NCBI RefSeq assembly: GCF_964188315.1
Contig: NC_135663.1
Coordinates: 35,650,001 to 35,714,000 of the forward strand
Source: Podarcis muralis
Lineage: Eukaryota
Length of the DNA stretch: 64,000 bases
Direction: 5' to 3'
In this document: positions 6,444-59,995 of the stretch, one piece after another
Layout: the number at the start of each line of letters is the position of its first letter
Position numbering within the stretch: the stretch's first letter is position 1
Program-made: the position numbers and the translations under genes
Notes under the pieces: generated by a model
Seen by the model: the letters and a program-made list of their open reading frames with translations, nothing else
Told to the model about the DNA's origin: nothing
The model's database searches: none

Positions 6444-6583
6444 NNNNNNNNNNNNNNNNNNNNNNNNNNNNNNNNNNNNNNNNNNNNNNNNNNNNNNNNN
6501 NNNNNNNNNNNNNNNNNNNNNNNNNNNNNNNNNNNNNNNNNNNNNNNNNNNNNNNNNNNNNNNNNNNNNNNNNNNNNNNNNNN
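6444..6583. other. Assembly gap (140 N)
   Basis: Run of N. Confidence 1.
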
Positions 6584-24226: not shown

Positions 24227-26237
24227 TCCAGAGACCATTTAGCACTTCTACCCAGGCCCTTATAAGCTTTGGCCAAGGGATCACCTCCATCCTTATTTTG
24301 CACCACAACTTCTGAAATCAGTCCTGGACACCCTCTTAATAAAACCTTGGGGGGGGGGGCAAACTGGAATATCTTGCTGCCAGTCGCTAGCATAGCTCCA
24401 AAGTTCTCGCCCCTGAACCAATGCTGCATCTCCCAGCATACTCCATGCTTGATAGTTTGTGAGAGGCTGAAAATAGTAACCTCTTCTCAGAGACAATGAT
24501 AATCCAGTGCTTATTAGTGGAGCTTCTAGTAGTCACACAACTTCACAAATTTCAAAGGTACACAATCTCTGATGTTTCATCAAGTAGGTAAGGTGTGTTG
24601 TTGCTTTTAAACATCCTTTCTTTCACAACTACACTTTAAATTCCCCCCAAATTTAAGACAAATAAGGGCAATGCAATAATGATAGAGTCACGAAAGATAA
24701 TGATTTGCATCTCTGTGAGTGGCACAGAAAATCATTAATTAGGCATTCAGAGTGTAAGTATATATGTATAAATTAGCATCTATTCATCATTGAAACTGCA
24801 ATAGATTTTTCATAACGGAATATTAACTATGTGAAGAGATTACTAAGGTTTCTGGATGAAGGCATCAGGCAACTGCAACACAAAAGTAATGGGAAATTTA
24901 AAAATGTAAATACTGAAATGTCATACCTAAGTGGCTGTCATAACACCATAGTTTAATACCATTTGCTACAGCCTTGCTTGCTGGAAGAGGTTGTTCCTTT
25001 TCTCTCTCTTTTGTATCTCCTGATAAGCATAAGAAATATCAGACATTCATGCCTGCTCATTAAGGAGCAGAACAAATCACAATTAGTATTTTAACTTGAT
25101 AGAGAATACTCAGTCTCTCAGGCCTTTACATACTTGTCTGAAAGCAAGGCAGATCTGGAAAGTGGCTGGAGAGAGGGGAATTCAAAGAGACCGCTGGGCT
25201 GCAAACCAGAATGAGTACCGTGCGGCATGTTTTTTTTATTTATTTAGCCCTAGAAATCCAATCTTGATAATTCAACTGTCACATTGCAACTGCATCAGGT
25301 ACATAGAGGACAGAATAATCTATCAATTGCAGGAGAAGACAGAATGGGACAGATCAATGTTGTGTTGAAAAGCAACTCATAGAGTGGCCAATTTCAAGAA
25401 CGTAAAAAAGATCTTCACAAGAAAATAAGGCAAGCTGGAGACTAATCAAATCCTAGTTACTCCTTCAGTAATCAAAAGTTTCAAGAATAACTGAGAACTA
25501 TACTTGACTCTTGGTCCTTCCTAATTAATAACATACAGGCAGATGCCCACATTCGGTAACCTAATCTATTCACAATGGAGACAATGGGGATGTGGATTTA
25601 TTCTGCTTTCACTCACACGCTGTCACCAATATCAAGGAACAGAGGAAATACCTGGGTTACTTTTTCACTAGGATGCTCTAGTTAGGAACATCTGGACAGA
25701 ATCTCACACTTTGCCTAAAACCAAACCAGGGCCACATGGGATCCCTCATCATAAGATCCCACAGTGCACAAGTAGTAAAATAATCCCACGAGGATTGGCA
25801 GAGTCAGTCAGCTTCCACACATGCTAAGTGCATGGAGAAATGAGCTGTAGAGAAAATGTAATGCAAACAGTCGAACTGTCCTTATGGACTGACTGCCTGT
25901 GCATTAGGAGATACTAAGGTGTGACCAATCTACCCATAAATATCCCAGGTGTTACCTCAGAGCATTGTTAGCCATCAATCAACCTTCTAATGCCACTGTA
26001 TGGTTTATCAATCTGGTCCAAAAATTATTTAACCCCAATTTTATACATATATGTATGTATGTAATAACATATGTTACTTAAAATGACCCTGTGTGGCTAT
26101 TTCTCCCCAAAAATTCCTCTGCTGAAGAGCAAAATTATTAACATTTTGTGCAAACTACAGTGGTACCTCGGGTTACATACGCTTCAGGTCACATATGCTT
26201 CAGGTTACAGACTCCGCTAACGCAGAAATAGTACATC

Positions 26238-26352
26238 TGAAGGCAGCCCTGTTCAGGGAAGTTTTTAATATGTGACATTTTAGTTTATTTTTCATCTTTG
26301 TTGGAAGAGTGGCTGGGGAAACCCAGCCAGATGGGCGGGGTACAAATAATAA

Positions 26353-26395
<43 letters not shown>
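26238..26395 (+). mobile_element. L2-like LINE 3' end with (TTA)n tail, inserted in the Tigger-like MITE
   Basis: …GAGTGGCTGGGGAAACCCAGCCAGATGGGCGGGGTACAAATAATAAA(TTA)n; interrupts the MITE after …AATAGTAC. Confidence 0.75.
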
Positions 26396-26397
<2 letters not shown>

Positions 26398-26438
26398 TTA
26401 GTTAAGAACTTTGCTTCAGGATGAGAACAGAAATTGTG

Positions 26439-28349
26439 GGTGCGACTTCCGGGTTGACGCGATCGGCTAATGGCGGATTCCCTCCGAGCTCCGGAGGGAA
26501 TCGGCTCTGCTGAGGACGGGTCTCACCGTGCCGGCGACACGGGGACCCTCAGAAACCACAGGCGCGGATGCCTGTGGACTTGGTGACTCGGTGGGCACCT
26601 TAAACGCCCTCCTTGACAGTCGAAGAGCCTTTTTAAAGGCTGCGGAGAAGGTACGAGGAGTGGCGTGGTGCTGAGAGTAGACCGCTACCTCAGCGGAGCG
26701 AAGCCGCAAGCCATTACCGGAGAGCGTCAACTTTTTTCCCGACAATTGGACTGGAAACAAATACCCCGTAAGTAGAACGAAATTCGGACTTTAGAAGAAA
26801 TTAATATCCTTAATCTGGAACGAACGGGGGGGTAGTGCTAAAGGGAAGTCCGCACCCCCCCTTTTTCATGCAGATAATTGGAAGCAAGGAACGAAAACCT
26901 AAGATCGGATTAAAAAATCTTTTTGTGTCTTTTTGGACTGACATGAGATTCCATAAATTTGTGAGAATAAGCTTTTACTTTTTATTTCAAAGCGGTGCTG
27001 GAGAGAAGAGGTGTTTTTTTTTTCTTTTTTGGAAAGTTTTTACGGACCCCCCCCCCCTCCGGGACCCTGGTGTGTCCTGTATTAACTTAGCGTGAAAGAA
27101 CGGGAGTTTGACAGCTGTCAACTGAGCTGTCAAACGGCTAGATCAAGATAAGAACTGTATCCTTATATCTCTCTGACACAGAGGTGTTACATTTAACTAG
27201 AAGGGATTGGAAATAAAGTAACAACAAGTAACAATAAAGTACAGGACTGTTGGTGAGGAACTTTGAAAAATGGAAATCCCCCTAGGGGAAACCAGTGATA
27301 TTACAATGGTTGCGGAAGGAAAACTACTAGCAGAAATAGAAAGAACTCTTTGTCTTGTGGGAACTCTACAAGAGCAAGAGATGGTTATGGAAAAGCAGCT
27401 GATGACCTTGATCTCTAAAATAAACAACCCTGCGGATGGGAGTGAGGACTTGACCTTGAAAGATTTTACAACTGAACCAGAAAAAACATCTTTGGAGTTG
27501 GTGGAAAAGGAGTCTGGAGGGGAAAAAGTGCAGGAATACGAACTTGTGCAGCCAGGGAACAGAGAACTCTTTTGGATTACAAGTTACAAGAGAAGAAAAG
27601 CAAAGGAGAAAGCCCACGGATATCATGGAGTTAAAGTCAAAGGAATAAAGAAACACAACTGGGACTTTCTCCTTTTTTCTGGCCTTGTTGACTGTGATTT
27701 CGAGGAACTTTTGTTAGAACTCTGGCAGCAAACCCGATTGGAAGGTGATTGGAGAGAAGGTGAAGAGATTGTGTTTAACATCCCTCGAGACTTGGATATC
27801 TACAAGAAGGACTACCAACAGAACAGGCGGAGAGAGACTCAAAGGGACTTAAAAGCCTCTGATGTGAGAAATCCGGGCTAAGAGTGCTACAAGAGGACAG
27901 GGATCTGGGAAGGGACAGATACCAGGGCGGGGAGGAGGGGGGGGAAATCTCACTTCATCTTATGATTTTTGGGTTTTATTATCTTAATTTAGATTCTAAA
28001 TATGAAAAAGTGGAATTTATGATATAAGAACCTGGATCGATCTTAGAAAATGGATTTAATGTATATAAGAGAACTAGATAATTAAATTGGGCCTAGCAAA
28101 GGGAATTAAGTTTAAGTATAACAAGAACAGGTTGAAGGAGTGAAATAAGAACTTGCTGAATTATACAGGAGAATTGGGATGCATGGGGTGGGGTGGGGGG
28201 AAGTCAAGAAAGAGGGTGATGAAAGAATCTATTTGTATTCTTTTTATTTTTTTTTCTTTTCTTTTTCTGTTCTTTTTGTTTTTGTTTTGCTCTTTTTGTT
28301 GTTATAAAACTCTGAAAACTCAATAAAAATTTATATATATAAAAAAAAA
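26439..28349 (+). mobile_element. Full-length 1.9-kb L1-type non-autonomous retroelement (HAL1/'half-L1'-like) with a single ORF
   Basis: 16-bp perfect TSD gagaacagaaattgtg (26423-26438 / 28350-28365); CpG-rich 5' end; G-rich and T-rich 3' UTR; AATAAA 28322-28327; A-tail; no ORF2. Confidence 0.8.
27270..27881 (+). CDS. Intact 203-aa ORF of the retroelement; putative diverged L1 ORF1p-like protein
   Basis: ATG in good Kozak context (AAAATGG); uninterrupted; N-terminal heptad-like segment and C-terminal FNIPRDL…QNRRRE reminiscent of the L1 ORF1p CTD. The homology is my inference. Confidence 0.55.
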   Translation: MEIPLGETSDITMVAEGKLLAEIERTLCLVGTLQEQEMVMEKQLMTLISKINNPADGSEDLTLKDFTTEPEKTSLELVEKESGGEKVQEYELVQPGNRELFWITSYKRRKAKEKAHGYHGVKVKGIKKHNWDFLLFSGLVDCDFEELLLELWQQTRLEGDWREGEEIVFNIPRDLDIYKKDYQQNRRRETQRDLKASDVRNPG

Positions 28350-29479
28350 GAGAACAGAAATTGTGCTCTGGCGACGTGGCAGCAGCAGATGGCCCCATTA
28401 GCTAAAATGGTGCTTCAGGTTAAGAACAGTTTCAGGTTAAGAAGGACCTCCGGAACGAATTAAGTACTTAACCCGAGGTACCACTGTATTGTCTTTCTTT
28501 AAAGTTGGATAATTTAATGGCCTCTATGTTCTGACATGTTCCATATTTCATAAGCATTCAGTAGTAGCAGAACTTTTTGTTCTTCAGCTGGCCAATTTTA
28601 TATTATATGTTTAACTGCAAGAGTTGCTGGACTTTTTTGTTGCATACATTTGGGCATTTGAGGTTTTAAAAAGAAGTCTGTGAATTGGGCATTTACCGTA
28701 TGAACAACCCACACCTAACACCAGCATAGAAAATGGCTTGCCCTGGGAGCATTCTGATGCAAACTTGCCTTTCCTGAGAAAATATAATAAGGAATAGAAA
28801 TAGTTATGTTTAAAATAAGGGCAACTTAACCTTGTGTACAGAATGAGCAGGACTCTTCAAAGACTGTGCCACTGAAGGCTAAGAAAAAATAAAGATTTAT
28901 GGAAATGTACAAAACATGTGAAGAATAATAGCTCCCTTGTTGGGACAGAAATCAGCAACAGGAATGTTGAAATAATGTGATCAACAAAACAGAGCTGGCA
29001 ATTTCAGCGATTGTTAGCATATATCAGCTTTACATAGAAAAATACCAATATTTATTCCAGACATAGGGACAGAATCTAGCTGCTGCTAACGCTCAGGGAG
29101 CAAACAACCACGCTTGTCCAGCAGTTGTGGTAACAGTAGGGCCTATTCATGCACCAGAAGTGGTTGCATGGGTGTGCAGCATGAACCTGAAGGTATAATT
29201 ACTCTAAAATGCAGCATTTTAGTGATGAATCCTGAAAAGACACCTGCTGGCTGCATAGCTGATGGCCCAGAAGCTCCTGCCTAGTTTGTCACTTCTTCTA
29301 CTCCTGTGGCTCTGTGCTAATGGGAGGGAAGGTAGCTTGAGAGAGGCGGCTAGGAACCCAGGTAACTGATGTGGAGACATCCAGTCCTGGGTCAGGGATC
29401 TCTGGATCTGATGGTGCTATGGTGGAGGTTTTCTCACTGTATTCCTCTTCTTCCTCTGAGACAGCAGGCCACAGGTATG

Positions 29480-39620: not shown

Positions 39621-42600
39621 CTCCCCTCCCCCTCCCCCTCCTTGATGCAGGACAATGCCAGCTCTGGTCTCCCTCTGCTCAACACTCTTTTTACACATCC
39701 ATGCCATCATGATGAGTGGGAAGAAGAAGAAGAAAAAGCTGCGTGTTTAAAGACAGCCCTTTCCTGCAGGAATAAACCTGCTCCCTCTGGTATCCATTAA
39801 CCTGCTCAGTGCAAGAGAAGCACAACTGATACGAGGCCCCAGTTGGCTTTCGGTGACCCTTTCCAGGCATGGAGAATTTTGCCAAGCTTGGCAACCAATA
39901 AGTGGTCAAAAGTCTTTAGGTTTCTTGACTTCTTCTGCAGTCCAGAGTTGGGCGGATTGTTTTCATGGTCCTTCTAACTGTGTGGCCTCCACTTTTTATT
40001 TTATGTATATGCTTTGTGTCCTTAAAAGATTTGTGTGCTTTCCTGCTTACAAAGCACACAATATGCTCTTCCATAAATTAATAACAATAAGCAAACAAAC
40101 AAACCTCCATATTTCTTGCTAGATGTACTTTTGGAAGTTGATCTGTAATAGTAAAGTTCTCCACATATACCGTTAGTGGCTGCAACTAACTGCCAGCTTC
40201 CCTAAACAGTGGATCTTATACCATCACCTGTTAGCATAAACAGAAAATAAATGGCACTGCTGCCATGTGCTGCTGATGTGCTAAAGCTGCATATGATTGG
40301 ACCACCACATAGGGAGAGTTAAATGCAATTCTCTTTCTCACTGGATCATCACCAGCACTGGTAATGGCTTTTTGGTGGCAACCAAAGATTGGTGTATATT
40401 TAAGGTCATTCAGTCCCACAGCTACTCTCTGAAAGAAGCCTCCATGGTTCCTTTTTTAAAGGTGGGGACTGAGGCCAAGGGGAAATCTGACTTGCCATCA
40501 GTTACTCAGTGTATTTAAATTATTTGAATTTAATCAGAAAACCCTGTTAGTCCACAAATCTCTTGGGAATATATCAAACTCTCACATTGCAAGGGTACAC
40601 AGGTTATCAAATTCTGATGGGTATGTATTCAACTCTTTTCAGAGCAAAGCTTTGGAAATATTGTCTACAAAAGATAAGTATTAGTTGATAAAGATAGTAG
40701 GGCTGTAGAGCAGAAATGGGGGATCTGCAGCTCTCCAGACACTGCTGACCACAACTTTCATCGTTCTTGACCATTTGAAGGACCACAACTTGCTCATTCC
40801 TGCTCTAGAGATTAGGTTGGTGATTGTTAAATCCTAAATTTCTAAGATGTTATATGAAACTGAGAAAAACTATTTTAAATAATAATGATGATAAAACATT
40901 TTTATACCGTCCTTTCTCAAAATTGTTTTCAGGGTAGGTTATAGTGTTTAAAAAGCATACAAATACACAAAACTACAAAACTCAGAACCTGTAATGAAGC
41001 TAGTTTAACAACTTTTTGTTCCATCTGTTTCCAATGGCAAACGCTAGAGAGAAATAATACCAAAAAAAACCTTACAAATTTGTAAATTAGAAAGGGTCAA
41101 TCCACCATGCCTAACTGATTTCTATAAAGTGCCACCCCTAATAAAAACACTGAGTAATGACTACCACTTGGTTCTTCTTGTTTACAAATATAAATAAGGA
41201 TTAGAACAGAAAAATAAATTATGGCAAATACTGTTATCTGGGTGCTAGCTATTTGTGTTAGTCACTCAAAAATTCTTTGTAGACCACTGCTGCAGGCCTT
41301 TGTAGCAAAAAGGGGGAGAGTAACTGAGGTTTCCCCTCTGAAGTTATTCAAATTAAATATAGATTCCCAAGTGCATGCAACGTTTGTTTATTGGATAAAC
41401 TTTATCCCAAGGGAATTAAAAGGGAAACTGCAATGTCTGCTAAATATAGGCTAGTAAACTGATGTTAATTACCTCAGATTTGGAGTAATTGGCCTTATAG
41501 CCAGATATTGATCCCAAACTGTCAAGCTTGTTCATGAGCAGTATAGTATAGCAGAAAGAAAATTCTCATGACATACAAGACCAAGATCCATGTGAATACC
41601 AAGCTTGTGCCCAGTGTCAATACTATAAAAATCCTTAATAACAAGGTTGCTCCCAAGGGTAATGGTTGAAGTGAGACAGGAGATCAGAAGTCTTACCTTG
41701 TGATCTTATAGAGATCATACAGGCAAGGTAGCAAATTAGAAACTATAGTAGGAGTTGTGCAGCTTGCTGCGACAAAAAAAAAAGGTCCAAATCCTATACA
41801 CACACACACACACACACACACTTTTATGTACCACCATTCTATGCAGTCAAAGGCTTTTTCTAGAGCTACCAAAACTATGGTTGATGTTTCAAGACCTTGA
41901 CCATGTGGATTAGATTACAGTGTCTGTTAGTCATCACCCAGGCATAAAACTGGAGTTACTGATTGAATATAACTGCAAATTGTAACAATCTGTTGCTAGG
42001 CTAATATGGAGAAGCCTCTGGGAGGTAGAAGAAATCAATGTACCTTTTTAGAGGGCAAACACCTGATTGGGTGTGGAAATCCCAAATTAAAAATGAATAC
42101 TGGTGTGAAGTTGTCTCCACACCCCTTCAGTCTCAGGTCACTTTCAGTTAAAAAGAAATTATATCACTGAAATGACATTTATACTGAACCAAAAAGTATG
42201 TGGAAAGAACCGAGTCCACTCTCACATTTAACTCTCCTTCTTCCTGCATTGCTATGTGGGCTTCAAAGCCAAAACTCTACAGATTTTTTCAAACTTAGAT
42301 CTTATTCTATTCTCCAAGCTTGAATAACCTTAACATACCTAAGATTTTGCAGGTACCTAGCATCTTGATCATAATAAAGCTGCATGGGATACCGCAATGG
42401 TTCTGGAATCCTGCATAGGATATGTGGTGCATGAGCCATGGCACTGGGACACTGGCAAGTACATATATGGGACAGGCAGAACATATCCACATCTTTAAAG
42501 CATCCATGTACGCATTAAGGTACCTGGTATAATCAATAAAGCCTCATTTAGTTTACTGTGGTTTTCCTCTCACAGATCTAAAATTCCCAGCACCCTTAAA

Positions 42601-42644
42601 CTACAGTTCCCAGGATTATTTGGGGAACTCATGTGCTTCCCCCA

Positions 42645-44150
42645 AAACATGATCCACCTGGAGTAGGAACCAGCAAGCCACTCCCCCATCCCTGCCAAGA
42701 AAACTCCATGGACAAAGACAACAGGCATATAAAAGTTATGACGCTGGAAGATGAGCCCCTCAGGTCAGAAGGCGTCCAACATGCTACTGAGGAAGAGCGG
42801 AGGACAAGTACAAGTAGATTCAGAGCTGATGAAGCCACTGGGCCAAAGCCGAAAGGTCGCTCAGTTGCGGATATGCCTGGAAGTGAAAGGAAAGTCCAAT
42901 GCTGTAAAGAAAAATATTGCATAGGAACCTGGAATGTAAGAACCATGAACCTGGGTAAGTTGGATGTGGTCAAAAATGAAATGGCAAGAATAAATATTTA
43001 CATCCTGGGCATCAGTGAACAAAAATGGATGGGAATGGGCAAATTCAGTTCGGATGACCATCATACCTACTACTGCAGGCAAGAATCCCGTAAAAGAAAT
43101 GGAGTGGCCCTCATAGTCAACAAAAGAGTGGCAAAAGCTGTACTGGGATGCAATCTCAAAAATGACAGAATGATCTCAATACGAATCCAAGGCAGACCTT
43201 TTAACATCACAGTAATCCAAGTTTATGCACCAACTACCGGTGCTGAAGAAACTGAAATTGACCAATTCTATGAAGACTTACAACACCTTCTAGAAATGAC
43301 ACCAAAGAAGATGTTCTTCTCATTATAGGGGATTGGAATGCTAAAGTAGGGAGTCAAGAGATAAAAGGAACTGAGAAGTTTGGCCTTGGAGTCCAAAATG
43401 AAGCAGGGCAAAAAGGCTAATAGAGTTCTGTCAAGAGAACAAGCTGGTCATCACAAACACTCTTTTCCAACAACACAAGAGACAACTCTACACATGGACA
43501 TCACCAGATGGGCAGCATCGAAATCAGGTTATATTCTCTGCAGTCAAAGATGGAGAAGCTCTATACAGCAAGCAAAAACAAGACCTGGAGCTGACTGTGG
43601 CTCAGATCATCAGCTTCTTATAGCAAAATTCAAACTTAAACTGAAGAAAGTAGGAAAAACCACTGGGCCAGTAGGATAAAATCTAAATCAAATCCCTTAT
43701 GAATACACAATGGAAGCGAGGAACAGGTTTAAGGATTTAGATTTGGTGGACACAGTGCCTGAAGAACTATGGATGGAGGCTCATAACATTATACAGGAGG
43801 CAGCAACGAAAACCATCCCAATGAAAAGGAAATGCAAGAAAGCAAAGTGGCTGTCCAACGAGGCCTTACAAATAGTAGGGGAGAGAAGGCAAGCAAAATG
43901 CAAGGGAGATAGTGAAAGATACAGGAGATTGAATGTAGATTTAGTCTACATCCCAATCCCAAAGAAGGGCAGTGCCAAAGAATGCTCCAACTAACGCACA
44001 ATTGCACTCATTTCACACGCTAGCAAGGTTATGCTTAAAATTCTACAAGGCAGGCTTAAGCAGTATGTGGACTGAGAACTCCCAAAAGTGCAAGCTGGAT
44101 TTCAAAGGGACAGAGGAACCAGAGACCAAATTGCAAACATGTGCTGGATT
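42645..44150 (+). mobile_element. BovB (RTE clade) LINE 5' portion: endonuclease to start of RT; frameshifted, internally deleted, 3'-truncated
   Basis: Translation KEKYCIGTWNVRTMNLGKLDVVKNEMARINI.ILGISE…RNGVALIVNKRV…NDRMISIRIQGRPFNITVIQVYAPT (APE endonuclease) and later YIPIPKKGSAKECSN..TIALISHASKVMLKILQ; BovB-type 5' leader. Confidence 0.93.
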
Positions 44151-45843
44151 AAACACAAAGTGGCCATTTGCGATCTGCCTAGTGAGATTAAATACCAACT
44201 AGCTGAAAGATAAAGAGAACAATAATATGCAACCTTGCTAAACTGTGTGCCACTTTCTGTAAGCTCACCCTAACTACTTTGCTATGCACAATAATCAATG
44301 GCTAGTAATGATACTGACCAAATGCACTTAACATTTCTGCCAGAGATTTGCAGCATGTATCAGAAGGATGATGGGCCTTCCCAGCTTGCTTTATGGTGGC
44401 TTGTGGAGGTTGATCCAGCAGCTAAGGAATAAACTTGATCTCTGACTCATCCTCTTTAGTGACTAACTTTTATTTCGGAAAAGGTTGCAGCTGCTAAATC
44501 AGAGGAGGCCAGGATAGTTTGCTTCTTCTGCAATAAGCCACAACACTACTCTCTGTGTGTCTAAATGCTCAGTGCCAAATTGGAAAAAGTGCTGGATCCC
44601 AGTGGTATGCTGGAAAATAATGTGGGGTCTTTTTAAATAACTTGACCTCCCGAAGCTTCAGAGTATAGTACAACGACCCCATGCTGCCAGTGAATATTGG
44701 CAGCATAGTCATGAGTCCTCATTCTACTTACATAAAATTCAGAGTTAGGAAGAGGGAAGCTAGTGTCTACAGCACCAAGGACACTAAACAGGGCCCTCAC
44801 TTTCATAAAAGACATTTGGAGTGTAAGTAAAACAAAGAAATCCAATCCAATCAGAAGATAAACAAAGCGATTTCACAGAAGCTGTACATCAGGTTTGGGG
44901 AACATTTAGCCCTCCAGATGTTGTTGAACTCAACTCATATTAGCCCTAGCCAGCATGGCCAATGAATGGCCTTACTAAATAGTCTCCACAGAGACATAAT
45001 AATTTGGGCAGTGGAATTACTGACCTTGTTTCACCATTGCGTGGAAGTCTAAACTTACTGATACAGAATCAAGGCATGATTATTATGTCTAGAGTTGAAC
45101 ATGGTCTTCAGTTGGCACTTTGATCTCTTAAGTAAGTGCAAACTTTTAAAATTATGTTTTTAAAAAATCAAGGAAAGCAATTAGCCTACACTTGAAGACT
45201 GAAAACAGAACACTGGAAGCTACTTTTCCTACAAAATTAAGTGATAGCATATGCGCTGAGCAACTTGCTGTGCTTCCCAAGGGAGCTCTTCCCCATATGT
45301 TAGCTGGTTCTTTAGAGCAGTGTTTCCCAACCACTGTTCCGCGGCACACTAGTGTGCCGCGAGATGTTGCCTGGTGTGCCGCGGGAAAAATTAAAAAATT
45401 GAAAGATTTTTTTTTTTTTAAGTCAAATTTTCGATTGGGGCGCCGTCACTAGATGACCCCTGGGGTTCCCTCCCTCCCTCCCGCTCTGCGCCTCCCTCCT
45501 CCTCCTCCTCCTCCGGGGAGGCCCTTCCTGGCTCTCGGCCAAGGCTTGGCGGCTGCCACTCACTCACTCGCTAGCCCACCCGTCCCTCCATCCCTGCACC
45601 CGGCCTCTCCCCCTCCGTCCCTGGCGCGGGGGCTGCCGGGATCCGTAGTCCCCTCGCCCTTGGGCTCCGCGCCCGCGCGGGGTGCGCAAACTACGTTTCC
45701 CAGCGTGGCCTGGCGGGCCGGGCGTTTTGTTTGAAGCGCTCTTCTCCCGGCCATGGAATGAGCGCGGCGGCCGGGCGGGCAGGGGCTCTTCCGCGCAGAC
45801 CCCGCGCAGCCTGCCTGCGCCCCCGCGGAGATCGGGCGGCAGG

Positions 45844-45900
45844 ATGGAGGCCGGGGATCCCCGCGGAGGCGGAGCGGCGGAGGCTGCGGCTGCCCCCCAG
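45844..45900 (+). pseudogene. Candidate captured first coding exon (MEAGDPRGGGAAEAAAAPQ)
   Basis: Strong Kozak (GCAGGATGG), 19 codons, CAG|GTAGGG donor; parent gene not recognised; no matching downstream exon identified. Confidence 0.4.
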
Positions 45901-46334
45901 GTAGGGCTGCGTCGGGGGTTTTTTATTTTTGCAATGCTGCATCCGCGCCGGAGGGGACGCATCGGACCGCGGGGAGACCTCTTGGCGGGCGTGCAAGGCA
46001 ATGCATGCGTGCAGGCGTTGCATGGAGTGCAGTGCAATGCAATGGCAACACGGCACCCTGCATGCATGCATGCAACTTCCACCGGCGCTCCGGACTTGGC
46101 AGGTGAGGGGGGTCCCCAGTGGGCGGCAGAGAGAGCTGGGAGGGCGAAGGGGAGCCGGGGGGGGAGCAGCGCTGCTCCCCGAGCCGAGTCCAGGGGGAAA
46201 CTTCGGCGCCGTTGCGCCGGGTGTTGGAAGCGGAGGCTGGCGGGGGCCCCTCACCTGCAAAACCTGGTCGCCTCTCATATATTTCGTGCATTGCATTCAT
46301 CGCCCGCTTTCTCCTCCAAGGAGCTCCCGGGGGC

Positions 46335-46475
46335 GCGCGTGGTTCTCCCCGTGTTATCCTCGCAACAACAGCCCTGCGAGGTGGGTCAGGCGAGTGGCCC
46401 AAGGGAGCACCCAGGGATTGTCCTGGCCAGGTGGGGTGATTTGAACCCTGCTCTCTGCCCGGTCTTCGTCCTCAT
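46335..46475 (-). mobile_element. Old Squam3/MIR-like SINE relic within the hAT cargo
   Basis: TTATCCTCGCAACAACAGCCCTGCGAGGTGGGTCAGGC…TGGCCCAAGG…CACCCAG…GATTTGAACCC is the reverse complement of a CORE SINE. Confidence 0.6.
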
Positions 46476-48541
46476 TTAGCCCCCACATGTGCATGACTGT
46501 GCATGCCTGAGGTTTTCCCCCCTCGTCTTGGCTATGGTGTGAGTCTGTGCTGTTAATTAATGGGGTTCTGCCTTCGGAGAAGATGAGCCAGCCCTCAAGG
46601 AGGTGATTATGTAATTTGCTAGCAATTCATGTCCCTCCCGGCGTGACGCTGCGCGCTGACGTCACGGGGCTGTAATGGTGGTGTGCCTCGAGATTTTTTT
46701 CATGAAACAAGTGTGCCTTTGCCCAAAAAAGGTTGGGAAACACTGCTTTAGAGAACATGCTCAAAACACTGCTTGCTTCCAGAGAAACTTGTCACTGCTG
46801 CTACCTTACAATTTGCTCTTGTTTTTCTTAGCTGCTCAAATTCTTGGGCTGTTTTGAGGCAAAGAATGATAACTATAGTGATTTATCTTTTTTAGTTGCA
46901 AAACTCTTAAATAAAGTGCAACGTGGCTGTTATTTTCATCACCCGCCTTCCCTTTTCTCCTGCCTACTCCATATTGCCCATCCACCAAACAACAGGCAAG
47001 TCCAGAAATCTGATTAGCTGCTATAAACAGACATTCAAGCTCAGAGCTGCAGATTTGGTTATAGAAACAATAGAAGTGTTAACTCACAGTGGCATGCAAC
47101 TGATTAACAAAGCCTTAGCTAAAGTTTTCAGCTAGATATGGAGACAGAATTTACGGCTGCAAAAATATGTCGCTAGTTATTTCATGCTTATTAGCCATTT
47201 GTTTACATGGAATCTTTTCAAAATTTTGACTCACTGATTAGGATAAAATGTTCACCTACTGGAGATGTAAAGCTGCCAATTTAGAAAAGCTAAAGGACAT
47301 AGTCCCTGGAATCCATCAAATGTAATTCTTAATAGTCTGAAAGCTTTCGAAATTGCATTAATTCAGTTACCACAATATTTTATACCTCGTCCGGCCCAGC
47401 CTTACCTTGTCTTTGCAATTTCCTGATATTCCATGGAGAATAATTGTGGCCAAGAGTAAATTTTGACAAAGGAAATGCTTTAGGCTTTTGCTTGTTGAGT
47501 TCTGTAAAAGTCTGTGGAATTGGATCTTTAGCTGTGAGCCCAGATACCAAGGTGTTGAAATGGTGTTAAAGCCCCTTGTACTGTATATGATAATGTCTTT
47601 TCATTTCATTCATGTTACCTTGAATGCTCTTACGGGTGGATAATGCAAAAACAGTCAAGATGTTTGTAATAGTTTTGTTTATCATACATTGCAAAATGAA
47701 ATAGAAACATTTTTAAAAGACCCCTGTATATATATTTATATTATGATCCTGACATTCATACTTGTTTCTTAGTTACAACTTAAACCGCAACCACTGTGGT
47801 TTTGGACCCCAAAGAAACTCAACTCCAGTTTGTTTTTAAAAGCACAATTCTAATAATATGTTCAAATAACAATAAGCTTTTAGCTTCACTTATTTTCAAG
47901 CTATTTTATTCAGTGCTTTAGTCATAACTACCATTTAAAATTATTATAATTGAAAGAGATTAGGTAGCAATTTGTTTCACTCACTTTACTCTTTTGTTAG
48001 TGTGTATCTCTGAAAGAACAATGATAAGAAAATAAAAACTGAAGGACTACAAATTGCCTTTTAAAGGTTTATCTAGATATCACACTGAATATGAACACAA
48101 CCATTAGAAGCATCTCTTGCACAAGTTGCCAGGCTTAATATTAAAAGAAGAGCTCCTAGCCCTTAAATGTGCTTCTATAAACTCAGCTCCTGAGCATGCA
48201 AAGTGTTAAGAAAATGCCTTCAAGCTTGCACAGAAGCTTCCCATTACCAATGAGTAACCGCAAATCACCCATCTGGCTGTAGGGGGGAATATCTATATAC
48301 CAGGACACAACTGATGTCTTTGAGGCAAACATCAGTCCCCGTACTAGCACACATCACTGAAATCAATGGGAGTTTTGCAAAAGCCCTTACCATTTTAAGC
48401 AGGATAACTCCAAGAAATCAGTGTAAGTTGCTGCCAGCTGGCCAGAAGGCAGAAAAGTACCCTAGCAACTAGTTAATTACAGCAAGAAATTTCAGAGGCA
48501 ACAACCTACTTCCTCTTTTCTTGATTGTTAATCCACTATGG

Positions 48542-48819: not shown

Positions 48820-51044
48820 TGCTATGGGAACTGAAGCTCTGTAAGGGGAACAGGGGCATCCTAACAACTCTCAACACCCTTGTCAGACCACAGTTCCCAG
48901 GGCCATTGAAGTGGTATTAGAGTGCTTTAAAAGTAAGGTGCAGATGTGGCTATGATATATTACACACTTGCTCTTTCTTTCCTAATGCCACAACTTTCCT
49001 GAACTGTAAAGCCCAATGGAGGTCTCGTGGGAGTGGTTGGATGCAGGGATACCAAAGAAGAACATCAAAAACCTTAGTACAGCCAGCTCTAGTGCTTTAT
49101 TTATGAAGGTGTAGACTTACAGCACAGCAGCCTGCCAGGCCTCCTTGCCTTTGCAGACATGGGACGGACATCGCAGCAAGGAGATGGCTTGCCTGCCTCC
49201 AAGCGAATGTGCATATATTCTTTATAATGCAAAGTAGCACACATCATTTCACCTGACTAGATGAGGGCATAGGTGGCAAATACCCAATCTTTACAGACAG
49301 CTCCCCTTTCTGGGCTCAGAGCCCAGCACCCCAAGCCCACAGATAAGAACAACATCAAAGCAAACCAATTAGCTTATATCAAAGCAAGTGAATATAAACA
49401 TATATAAGCTCATTGCTACAACATTACCAATTAATTGCGAGGTTATCTTGACTACCAAGATGGTGTTAGCAAAGCTTCCAGAGTAGTTCACCTTGGGTTC
49501 AACACCTAGGGTCTTTCTTTCGTTCTCCCCCACTTCCCACCCTCCTCATCCTCTTTCAATGGGCATACAAATATGGGGAAGTAAAAGAATATATCAGATA
49601 GCTCTGGGGGCAACATGAAATCAGGCTATGGGCAGCATGTGGCCCCCAAGGCCACAGACGGTTCCACACCTGCTTGACCATTTTCCGATTCCCCTCAGCC
49701 AAACCATATTCCTTCTGCAGCCTCTGTGAGGCATTGTGAGCTTTTGTGGCAGGGGATGTCAATGTCCTTTGTTAATAATTCCTCTGGAAAGGAGGTCCTT
49801 GGCAAGCCCAGTTCTGAATATACTTTGCGAGTGTCCAGTTCAAACTTAAGTAACATAGAGCTGACTGTTTTTAAATGCTTGAGAATGGATTGAAAACAAA
49901 TGAGTTTTGAAAGTTTGGGGGACTCTGCATGGTATCCCAAATCTAAAAATAGTACCTCGACACCAAATCAAAGAAAGGCAAAGGAAATATTAATTAATTA
50001 GTAGTGCATCTACAATCCTCTTCAGGCATTCAGTTTGACCATATGAAGGAACAAACATAAATGCTGCATGTGTGGGGCACACTTCTTTCCCAGCGCATGA
50101 TCCATGTTCATACGAAGGCCTTACTGCAGTCCCCTTCAAAATGATGTTGATCATGCATTAACTAAGGAGTGTGCTTGGCCTGTGCAATATCCCAAAGTGG
50201 AGGAACCTGCCCCACGCATTTGCCCCTTTGTGCATTCAAACGGAATGCCTAAATGCAGCTAATGACTTGCTACAAATGCAACACAATTCTATTCATGGAA
50301 GTAAATTCCACTCATTTCAACTGCACTTATTCCAAGTAAGCATGCGTAGGACTGCAGCCTTAGCCACACAGTAATAATTGGCATACTCAAGATATAGAGA
50401 TTTCAGTCCCTCTAGCATGCCATAAAAATGTGGTGTTCTTCTTCTTCGCTATTTAATGTTCAGGATTCTGCATTCAGGCAACCAGCTCTCACTACACTTT
50501 GCCTTTGGAAATATAATGGGAGCACAGAGGCAGACAATCTGTCCCAAACAGGAAATGCAAAAGGCATGTGGCAGGAGAAATGGCAAGCTCTAAGAATATC
50601 CATCACTTCCTTTGCGTGGGCAGTGACAGAAGTCAGCACAGGAAGTTGCTTGGCTATAGGACAAATAACAAGATGAAGCAGGTGAAGCATTTATCTGCCT
50701 AAATTTCAAAACTGAGTTAAGTGCATCCCTTCTGATATGTTACATTGAAATAGACAGAACTTTGACTCCCAACAGTCACTAGTGCATATGAATATTTTTG
50801 AACTCTTTGCAAGTGTTGGATTTTCCATTATCAGAACTGTTATCAGAGAATGCAAGCAAGTAAGCAGCAGGGACAGCGGCTGTTCCTCCTCCTCAATTAT
50901 GGCAGCTCCATGGAGGACCCTCCTGAAATGCTGTGTGCTTAGGCTTCAGCAGCTGGCCCAAAATATTGGTTCTCTAACCAGAGGGGTCCTAAAATTGTAG
51001 CTTGCTGTAAAACAAAACAATTTACAGTTACATATTGTGAATGT

Positions 51045-51476
51045 TTTTGTCCACGGAGTTTTGTCCAGTGAGAGCTGGACCATAAAGAAGGCTGATCGCC
51101 GAAGAATTGATGCTTTTGAATTATGGTGCTGGAGGAGACTCTTGAGAGTCCCATGGACTGCAAGAAGATCAAACCGATCCATTCTGAAGGAAATCAGCCC
51201 TGAGTGCTCACTGGAAGGGCAGATCATGAAGCTGAGGCTCCAATACTTTGGCCACCTCATGAGAAGAGAAGACTCCCTGGAAAAGACCCTGATGTTGGGG
51301 AGGATTGAGGGCACAAGGAGAAGGGGATGACAGAGGACGAGATGGTTGGACAGTGTTCTCGAAGCTACGAACATGAGTTTGACCAAACTGCGGGAGACAG
51401 GGAGCGCCTGGCATGTTCTGGTCCATGGGGTCATGAAGAGTTGGACACGACTAAACGACTAAACAACAACAACATC
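51045..51476 (+). mobile_element. 5'-truncated BovB 3' end with (CAA)n tail
   Basis: ESWTIKKADRRRIDAFELWCWRRLLRVPWTARRSN.SILKEISPECSLEG…LQYFGHLMRREDSLEKTLMLG; tail GGACACGACTAAACGACTAAACAACAAC; 11-bp TSD attgtgaatgt (51034-51044 / 51477-51487). Confidence 0.95.
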
Positions 51477-54903: not shown

Positions 54904-56454
54904 TGTAAGATCACAAGAGCATGTAACCTCTCTCAACAGTCCTTGGGTCCATCAGCAGAGCCCTACACTGATTTTTGCTCACTATTGTAATCAAAGCAAG
55001 CTCGGTTTCATTTAGGTCTATGCTCCAAGATGAAAATAAGAAATGACTCAAAGACACTCTAGATATGAAATGGGTTCCTGTTTGAATACTTACAAATAGA
55101 TTGAATAAGATTCATTGACAAAAAGTGTGTAGAGCCCCAGTTCTGGTGATTTCTCTAATCCCCTGGTGATTGTATACATAAATAGCATGCTACTAAACCC
55201 AGGTCACTTTAAAAAGATGAAGAAAGCCCCCCACCCAAAAGAAGAAGAACTCTTTATTGCACTGGCTGGTTGTTCCTAGAGTTCCTCTAGATAAGACCAC
55301 CTGCCTGCCCTTCCAGCCGTCCTCTACGCTGCTTTCATCTGTGTTGAAAGGAAACTAGCAAGACACACCTGTTCTGTGCCTGGGGGGAAGCACCCAAGCA
55401 GCTTTGCATTTTGATAGCCTCTTCCTATATCAATTCTCTCTACCTTTGCAAGAGAAGAATCCTGCCACAGCTTGAGAAGCCTGTGACACCACACCAATTT
55501 TAGAGTAACTTTTCTACCGGCTTTGAAGTTCCATATAATTTTGCAGACATGTGACAATCACATCGCACTTCTGATTTTATCATAGGTCCCCATTTGTTAT
55601 GATGTCTACATCCCATATGGCAAATTCACTCCAAATATGGTGGTTGCCAGCTTCACTAGTCAACAAAGATCTCACCAACAAGAAAAGAGATTTCACCAAC
55701 CAGAAAAGCTGAAAGACTAACAGTACAAGCCTAACTATGTCTACTCATCAGAGGGACATACAGGAGAGCCTCTCTGAACAATCTCAGCTCAGGGGCGGGG
55801 AGACGCCTCTTTGGAGACAGACCCTTTTGCAATACTTGTGCATATTATCTAAAAAGGAGGAGAAGGAAGGGGTATATTTGCTTTCCTTTAGCACAACTGG
55901 TGGTTTTTCAATATGCAAATGAGTGCAATCTAATCAATTGGTTAATCAGTTCATTGACAAGATCATGTGATTCACAAGCTAAAGTTTCTTTAATCAGATT
56001 CCTTTTAATCAGGTGACAACGATGGGAAAAGGGTTGCTTCACAATATTCTCTAGGTAGTCAGGCACATGTTAAAAGGCAAAGGAGAAAGACCAGTTAAAA
56101 AGAAGGTGGTGACCTTCATGAAAACCCTAAGAAAACATGGTTAGGATGTAAACAGAGGTGCAATGCAAAGGCTTTTACTTCCAACCAAAGTTGCCACCTT
56201 TTTCTTTTTACATGTCAAAAATGCACAAGAGACATGCATTCTCTGCCCTGGGCACTGGGCCACCAACACATATGCTTGTTTGCTGAAAATCAGTCCTTAG
56301 CTATTCTCCCCACCTGGGTATTTGAACCTGGGAGCCCATGCACCCAATTTGAAAATTATACCCCAGACTGCAATCCAGGTACCATGATGACAAGAGGTCC
56401 CAGGTTCAAAGCCCCAGACTAGTTCTGTCTAGGTGGGGAAAACTGGCCATACCA

Positions 56455-59669: not shown

Positions 59670-59995
59670 GCAAGGATTCAACCCTTTGGTTTGGCAGCAG
59701 CTACTCTTTGGAACTCCCTGCCCATTTTTATTAGGCAGGCACTCTTGCTTTAATGTTTCTGGCTCTTGCTCAATTTTCTTTCAAGCAAGTCTACCCAGAT
59801 ATGCAATTTTTAACATGCATTTTTATTGCATATACTTATTTTAAAACTGCTGGTGTTATTTATATTTTGATGCAAACATGTTTTTCATGTTTGCTTTCAT
59901 CTGTGTTTTTTAATGTATATTTTAGATCATTCTGTGTAAACCCCTTGGAGGCTCTTGTCATCAATTAAGCAGTATATAAAATGTGTGTAATAAAT
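59670..59995 (+). mobile_element. Old L2-like 3' fragment
   Basis: Remnant FGLAAATLWNSLPIFIRQAL followed by an L2-type tail …GCAGTATATAAAATG…AATAAA. Confidence 0.65.

Follow-up and report, generated by a model that had tools for sequence, protein, structure and literature searches.

A likely family of low-copy, L1-like retroposons without ORF2 in the lizard Podarcis muralis, encoding an orphan protein of 203 residues

Introduction

Non-autonomous derivatives of long interspersed nuclear elements (LINEs) that encode a protein are rare, the main examples being HAL1 in mammals, HeT-A in flies and Ag-Sponge in mosquitoes, and elements of this kind bear on the question of how much an ORF1p-type protein supplied in cis contributes to the capture of ORF2p. 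Here we analyze a 1.9-kb element with an L1-like build in the genomic DNA of the lizard Podarcis muralis, found in a 64,000-nucleotide stretch of DNA (assembly GCF_964188315.1, contig NC_135663.1, positions 35,650,001 to 35,714,000; this whole stretch is called the window, and all positions below are positions within it).

As far as HAL1 is covered by the accounts available for it (Smit 1999; Bao & Jurka 2010, via PMC5753468 and PMC5786205), HAL1 and the lizard element are both about 2 kb long, non-autonomous and devoid of ORF2; both consist of a 5' untranslated region (UTR), one open reading frame (ORF) in the position of ORF1 and a 3'UTR with poly(A); and both carry the hallmarks of L1-type insertion and presumably depend on L1 ORF2p. 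In the same accounts HAL1 encodes a recognisable L1 ORF1p, whereas the ORF of the lizard element has no detectable similarity to ORF1p, is acidic, reaches about 60% of the length of a lizard ORF1 and has an invariant, family-specific ...ASDVRNPG end. The hosts also differ, HAL1 belonging to mammals and the present element to a lizard. By analogy, we regard the element as HAL1-like in architecture and presumed working; membership of HAL1 is not claimed, because it is defined by an ORF for ORF1p, to which this ORF has no detectable similarity. No HAL1-like element described in lizards was returned by a full-text literature search.

HeT-A (Drosophila, Jockey clade) and Ag-Sponge (Anopheles, CR1 clade) resemble the element in being non-autonomous, protein-coding LINEs with ORF1 only, and the one protein that each encodes is considered to act together with the machinery of an autonomous partner; they differ in belonging to other LINE clades and hosts and in having recognisable Gag/ORF1-type proteins (PMC5786205). 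For the proteins of HAL1, HeT-A and Ag-Sponge, help in cis toward ORF2p has been proposed (PMC5786205).

A further point of comparison is provided by the clade-1 L1s of Anolis carolinensis (L1_AC1-15), which begin with GACTTCCGGTG-N8-ATGGCG and have a 5'UTR of 792-1,465 bp with about 45% GC and about 56 CpG, the first ~120 bp being the most conserved, and a 3'UTR of 194-570 nt with 33% GC (Boissinot & Sookdeo 2016, PMC5381506). More generally, lizard L1 3'UTRs are low in GC and contain a T-rich repeat, AATAAA and an A-tail, with G-rich tracts as exceptions (PMC5381506). The element shares with the Anolis L1s a GACTTCCGG...ATGGCG start, a long CpG-rich 5'UTR of 45-48% GC and an A/T-rich 3'UTR with T-rich repeat, AATAAA and poly(A), and differs from them in that they have ORF2 and an ORF1 of 762-1,125 nt, compared with an ORF of 612 nt in the element (PMC5381506).

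The explanation of the locus that we consider likely is that it holds a full-length, recent insertion from a low-copy family of non-autonomous, polyadenylated retroposons that are L1-like in build, lack ORF2 and are mobilised by L1. Such an element would be composed of a CpG-rich 5'UTR of the L1 clade-1 type, a single ORF where ORF1 would stand and a T-rich 3'UTR like that of an L1, with AATAAA.

A 1,911-bp insertion into a continuous repeat

The insert measures 1,911 bp (26439-28349, + strand) and lies between two identical 16-mers, GAGAACAGAAATTGTG (Table 1). The base that precedes the left copy is T and the base that precedes the right copy is A, so the target-site duplication (TSD) is exactly 16 bp long. 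Apart from this pair, the entire 64-kb window has just one non-simple 16-mer that is found twice 500-8000 bp apart, and by our own arithmetic about 0.1 such pairs are expected by chance. The 3' end of the insert has AATAAA at 28322-28327, a 13-nt spacer and A9 at 28341-28349, and a TSD, AATAAA and poly(A) occurring together are the hallmarks of an L1-type insertion.

The other recurring 16-mer, TGCTTTCATCTGTGTT, stands at 55330-55345 and 59892-59907, 4,562 bp apart, and its second copy is not preceded by an A-tail. This pair may be due to chance (~0.1 expected) or may be the TSD of another insertion.

Independent information on the site came from four public read runs of the same organism, two of DNA (X1 and X5) and two that are probably of RNA (X15 and X16). 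Dozens of read contigs from other copies of the surrounding repeat join 26434/26438 straight to 28369-28391, and these contigs, being continuous across the site, are paralogous empty sites. Since other copies of the host repeat are uninterrupted at this position, the 1.9 kb is an insertion into a formerly continuous repeat. The host repeat itself is bounded by a 20-bp terminal inverted repeat (TIR), TACAGTGGTACCTCGGGTTA, at 26156-26175, with its reverse complement at 28469-28488 and TA beside both.

The host repeat (26156-26438 plus 28366-28488) has internal sub-repeats of the CTTCAGGTTA type and a summed read depth in the millions; a search of the 64-kb window found no second copy of it. Nested within it is a SINE-like tail (26269-26396, ...GGCTGGGGAAACCCAGCCAGATGGGCGGGGTACAAATAATAAA; SINE, short interspersed nuclear element) that runs into a perfect (ATT)14 microsatellite at 26353-26395, and loose ends of reads at 26233/26269/26306 delimit this nested tail.

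Table 1. Positions of the element, its parts and the repeat that it interrupts (positions within the window)
Feature	Position	Strand	Remarks
Left part of interrupted high-copy TIR repeat (like a miniature inverted-repeat transposable element, MITE)	26156-26422		read contigs, TIR
Left TSD copy, 16 bp (GAGAACAGAAATTGTG)	26423-26438		16/16 identity with 28350-28365
5'UTR, 831 nt	26439-27269	+	GC 47.8%, 43 CpG, CpG observed/expected 0.92
Single ORF, 203 aa plus TAA	27270-27881	+	only sizeable sense ORF; ATG in a good context (-3 A, +4 G)
3'UTR, 468 nt	27882-28349	+	GC 32.9%
Right TSD copy, 16 bp	28350-28365		16/16 identity with 26423-26438
Right part of same interrupted repeat, ending in right TIR	28366-28488		read contigs, TIR

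Anatomy of the element

An earlier, sequence-only reading had described this locus as a full-length 'half-L1'-like element with a perfect 16-bp TSD, an intact CpG-rich 5' end, a single 203-aa ORF, G-rich tracts, a T-rich 3'UTR followed by AATAAA and an A-tail, no reverse transcriptase and no room for ORF2. Each of these features is present. The CpG observed/expected ratio of the 5'UTR, 0.92, compares with 0.26 for the window overall; two G-tracts with the capacity to form G-quadruplexes lie in the 3'UTR at 27925-27944 and 28176-28200; the T-rich repeat occupies about 28227-28300; and only 468 nt follow the stop codon, with no reverse transcriptase or endonuclease match for any ORF of the insert. 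The element thus has nothing that corresponds to the ORF2 of an autonomous L1, which encodes an APE endonuclease and reverse transcriptase. Within the 64-kb window, a single copy of the element and no L1 were found.

Four upstream ATGs and two pairs of homopolymer tracts, G7/C7 (26826-26861) and T10/C11 (27014-27057), are found in the 5'UTR. As RNA, this region is predicted to fold well beyond shuffled sequences (-292.9 kcal/mol, z = -8.3), and among the features of the fold are a hairpin between G7 and C7 (26826-26861) and a near-palindrome (27110-27133).

A SINE identity was considered and rejected: SINEs are <600 bp, non-coding and transcribed from an internal Pol III promoter that comes from a small RNA, whereas the element is 1.9 kb long with a conserved 203-aa ORF. 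An Rfam search of the element gave chance-level matches only and no small-RNA head.

The element belongs to a multi-copy family

In X1, contigs of the single-copy flanks have depths of 10.2 and 10.0 and contigs of the element have depths of 78.9, 79.3 and 89.3, a ratio of 7.8-8.9; in X5, the corresponding values are 15.2 and 16.3 for the flanks and 158.6-212.9 for the element, a ratio of 10-13.5. One of the contigs at elevated depth, 1,182 bp long, covers 27049-28226 and thus takes in the last part of the 5'UTR, the entire ORF and the greater part of the 3'UTR. Because this one contig spans the passage from ORF to 3'UTR, the junction that lacks ORF2 is common to all of the copies collapsed into it. 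The contig differs from the window copy by 5 substitutions and 1 indel, and no indel is reported within the ORF, so the majority sequence keeps the ORF open. By our reading of the contigs, the window copy is ~0.5% different from the majority, and the three differences that fall in the ORF are all missense.

These depths are those of a family of roughly 8-13 near-identical copies per haploid genome, accompanied by more diverged subfamilies, and the locus is one member of a multi-copy family with the same ORF2-less structure rather than a single accident. As read from X1 (about 8) and X5 (about 11-13), the ratio of element to flank depth differs between two individuals, which could reflect insertion polymorphism of the family or mere coverage noise.

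The more diverged relatives can be recognised in several ways. A 3'UTR contig with about 85% likeness is present at about 11x flank depth, and a likeness of 85% is attained by diverged genomic copies in the read data only at the two ORF ends, 27270-27376 and ~27786-27879. Variant contigs also replace 27138-27274. Contigs that join 27137 to 27275 are present at depth 121 in X1 and 243 in X5, and this joint suggests a subfamily that has lost, or has other sequence in place of, the final ~130 nt of the 5'UTR together with the first ATG. The ORF of that subfamily would consequently start at Met13, as it does in more distant members of the family.

The ends of the element resemble those of lizard L1s

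At its 5' end, the element reads GGTGC-GACTTCCGG-(17 nt)-ATGGCG, with GACTTCCGG at 26444-26452 and ATGGCG at 26470-26475; the 9-mer GACTTCCGG has a single occurrence in the window, 0.11 being the number expected. Summed depth in X1, counted at 85% likeness, is ~17,000 over 26470-26563, ~4,200 in the next bin and ~1,700 over 26658-26751, and it falls to ~280 past 26751 and to about 80-130 over the ORF, with a flank depth of 10. This gradient indicates that the first ~300 bp are common to a far larger repeat population than the rest of the element, as is expected if the promoter region is common to many L1 families.

In length and GC content, both UTRs of the element fall within the ranges published for Anolis clade-1 L1s, as does the 5'UTR in its number of CpGs, and the length, GC content, T-rich repeat, AATAAA and A-tail of the 3'UTR fit published lizard L1 3'UTRs. 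Together, the published Anolis consensus, the base composition and the depth gradient point to derivation of the 5' end from an L1 5'UTR. When the ends were compared with published descriptions of lizard L1s, along the lines that the sequence-only reading had proposed, the 5' motif matched the published Anolis clade-1 terminus; the 3' end agrees by description, with G-tracts that are atypical.

The ORF encodes a member of an orphan protein family

Searches of Pfam, PDB sequences and the ESM Atlas with the ORF and with a distant member of its family gave nothing usable, and a Pfam search with 14 family members at E<=10 gave zero matches, including to models of the Transposase_22 type. Word searches of 5.8 billion proteins and profile searches of 1.84 billion recovered relatives, which make up an orphan family of about 30 unnamed sequences (129-215 aa) in about 16 clusters at 90% identity. 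These relatives are 25-69% identical to the window ORF, and every one of them was found in a run assembly, on a contig of 0.9-1.9 kb. An fn3-repeat protein that appeared among the search matches was judged spurious. L1 ORF1p was absent from the matches of the word searches (112-376 aa, E<=10), from those of a profile search without length limit (1.84 billion representatives, E<=0.001) and from those of a PDB profile search with the orphan family.

Members of the family have in common an N-terminal motif, MAAxGKLxAEIER..LVG.LQEQ, and a C-terminus, ...KDYQQNRRR.TERDLRASDVRNPG, with the stop directly after it and the invariant end ...RASDVRNPG-stop; the middle of the protein is variable. Conservation of the length and of both termini, set beside the divergence of the UTRs and the middle, speaks for selection on the protein. 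The C-terminal NPG was also considered as a 2A-like sequence, and this reading was rejected, as SDVRNPG-stop misfits the pattern D(V/I)ExNPG-P and has a stop instead of proline.

The predicted isoelectric point of the protein is 5.0, and those of the family are mostly 4.5-6.4. Basic patches are found at residues 104-131 and 170-203, and an acidic linker follows the helix that is predicted near the N-terminus. Two AlphaFold2 runs, with 14 and 23 sequences, had mean predicted local distance difference test (pLDDT) scores of 45 and 48; they place an N-terminal helix at about residues 8-52 with moderate confidence and elsewhere have pLDDT <50 and no consistent sheet. On a heptad count, at best 64% of the a/d positions of this helix are hydrophobic, so it is not established as a coiled coil.

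The PDB profile search with the family gave a single weak match, between residues 1-41 of neuroguidin and profile positions 1-41 (E 0.48, 14 bits). The matched protein is human (PDB 7mq8 chain NC), the alignment runs Met1-to-Met1, and it corresponds to 27270-27392 of the window (ORF residues 13-53). This non-significant resemblance could be a hint of a host-derived N-terminus.

A HAL1 element has an ORF homologous to L1 ORF1p, with coiled coil, RRM and CTD; none of this was found here, and from its sequence the ORF cannot be classified as ORF1p. Therefore, the likeness to a 'half-L1' that the sequence-only reading had seen holds for the architecture of the element and fails for its protein, which has no detectable homology to L1 ORF1p.

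Expression

In X15 and X16, contigs cover 26484-27056, 27047-27881 and 27869-28226 of the element, with the unique flanks at zero depth. In X16, element depth is 18-30, which by our rough scaling to the flanking repeat is about ten times DNA carry-over; coverage of the element in X15 is compatible with background. It is probable, then, that the element is transcribed.

A 4,261-nt contig from X15, at depth 134, matches only the first 107 nt of the ORF (27270-27376), with 80% likeness. Depth in X15 over the last ~94 nt of the ORF (~27786-27879) is raised by an equal amount, probably owing to the same contig. It extends about 520 nt upstream and about 3.1 kb downstream of its relative of the ORF, and may represent a longer relative, a partner that is autonomous or a copy that forms part of a transcript of the host.

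A proposed life cycle and the points that weigh against it

If the locus is what we take it to be, the 5'UTR, which presumably serves as an internal Pol II promoter and begins with ETS-like and YY1-like boxes, would drive transcription of the element, the RNA would be polyadenylated at 28340 and the 203-aa protein would be translated from it. Reverse transcription of the RNA, primed at a nicked target, would be carried out by the ORF2p that an autonomous lizard L1 provides in trans, and this would give the 16-bp duplication. The protein may act in cis on its own RNA, aiding it in competition for L1 ORF2p. The sequence-only reading had likewise proposed a young, non-autonomous, protein-coding family: multiple, near-identical copies and a conserved ORF are shown by the reads and searches, and mobilisation in trans by L1 is what we infer.

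Several observations fit this proposal less well. The bottom-strand nick site, TCTC/AT, is only a loose fit to the preference of the L1 endonuclease, whose preferred site is TTTT/AA. The L1 origin of the ends is indirect, drawn from a short motif, a depth gradient and composition; the boxes of the 5' motif are 17 nt apart in the element and 10 nt (N8+2) apart in Anolis L1s, and the G-rich 3'UTR tracts are atypical of lizard clade-1 L1s, in which such tracts are exceptional (PMC5381506). An acidic protein that lacks the ORF1p signature is unlike a classical nucleic-acid chaperone. In addition, the RNA status of X15 and X16 is a guess made by the tool, and ratios of contig depth are rough copy numbers, which nevertheless exclude a single copy.

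Alternative origins of the element and its protein

The family could be a strict counterpart of HAL1, born by internal deletion of an autonomous lizard L1, with an ORF that is a shrunken descendant of L1 ORF1 and has kept the N-terminal/coiled-coil part and lost RRM and CTD. The position of the ORF, behind an L1-type 5'UTR, is that of ORF1, and a long N-terminal helix is predicted as in ORF1p; moreover, the N-terminal/coiled-coil part of ORF1p is too variable for Pfam models, so negative searches are weak evidence here. We consider this origin possible but doubtful, because no Transposase_22 or other Pfam model was matched by the 14 members at E<=10, ORF1p was absent from the PDB profile search while profile and word searches returned the orphan family only, the protein is acidic, and the AlphaFold2 models, low in confidence, have no RRM-like sheet. 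The extra read depth over the ends of the ORF also amounts to ~5-12 copies only, compared with hundreds over the 5'UTR. Where the protein alone is concerned, the Pfam, PDB and profile negatives leave descent from the variable N-terminal part of ORF1 as a minority view that deserves to be kept in mind. On the whole unlikely, in our judgement, though worth stating, is the idea that ORF1 has been replaced in an L1 chassis by a different protein, an adaptor maintained by selection, with an acidic helix, basic patches and the invariant C-terminus, which was either captured or formed de novo. If that were true, a parasite of a parasite would enlist L1 ORF2p, or escape control by the host, in a way unlike that of ORF1p, and the protein would represent a new class of retroposon-encoded proteins, common to several diverged subfamilies.

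The sequence-only reading had named two ordinary origins that would compete with its own, a processed pseudogene of a host gene and a one-off deleted L1. According to the former, the germline-expressed mRNA of a gene for a 200-aa protein has been retroposed repeatedly by L1, the window copy being a processed pseudogene. L1-mediated processed pseudogenes and retrogenes are, like the element, full-length copies of polyadenylated RNA with a long TSD, and a host gene would agree with an ORF family that lacks any transposon-protein signature and is conserved across diverged relatives, with the weak match of 41 N-terminal residues to neuroguidin (E 0.48), and with the 4,261-nt contig of X15, in which sequence related to the ORF ends, though diverged, stands at high depth; boxes of the types ACTTCCGG and ATGGCG are moreover found at the start sites of housekeeping genes. 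Such an origin is nonetheless improbable. An 831-nt 5'UTR with four upstream ATGs and the size and GC content of a lizard L1 is untypical of a host mRNA; with its L1 clade-1 signature, the first ~300 bp come from a repeat population of hundreds to thousands of copy-equivalents; several subfamilies have ORFs of 196-215 aa, all on contigs of 0.9-1.9 kb; and no member is named or present in NCBI/UniRef sources, where an annotated host gene probably would be. Processed pseudogenes differ further from the element, which forms a multi-copy family with subfamilies, has an L1-type 5' terminus and UTRs and has no known intron-containing parent. A one-off internal deletion of an ordinary L1, with no family behind it, would agree with the single copy in the 64-kb window; it is a very remote prospect, as it misfits element contigs at 8-13x flank depth in two individuals, one of them spanning the shared ORF-3'UTR junction without ORF2, and the related intact ORFs in other data sets.

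Implications

If the likely explanation, a low-copy family mobilised by L1, is correct, a lizard family that is young and transcribed, and whose protein is intact, conserved and unlike ORF1p, would be a natural experiment on what an ORF1p-type protein, supplied in cis, adds to the capture of ORF2p. It would also give rise to insertion polymorphisms in lacertid genomes. Repeat annotators would probably miss or misclassify the element, and gene annotators could call it a gene.

Other features of the window

Elsewhere in the window, a run of N occupies 6444-6583, and many overlapping GC-rich ORFs are found at 45310-46753. Fragments of open frame at 42600-44200 (+) and 50950-51460, for example ...ELWCWRRLLRVPWTARRSNRSILKEI..., bear a resemblance, judged by eye, to Bov-B/RTE LINE ORF2.

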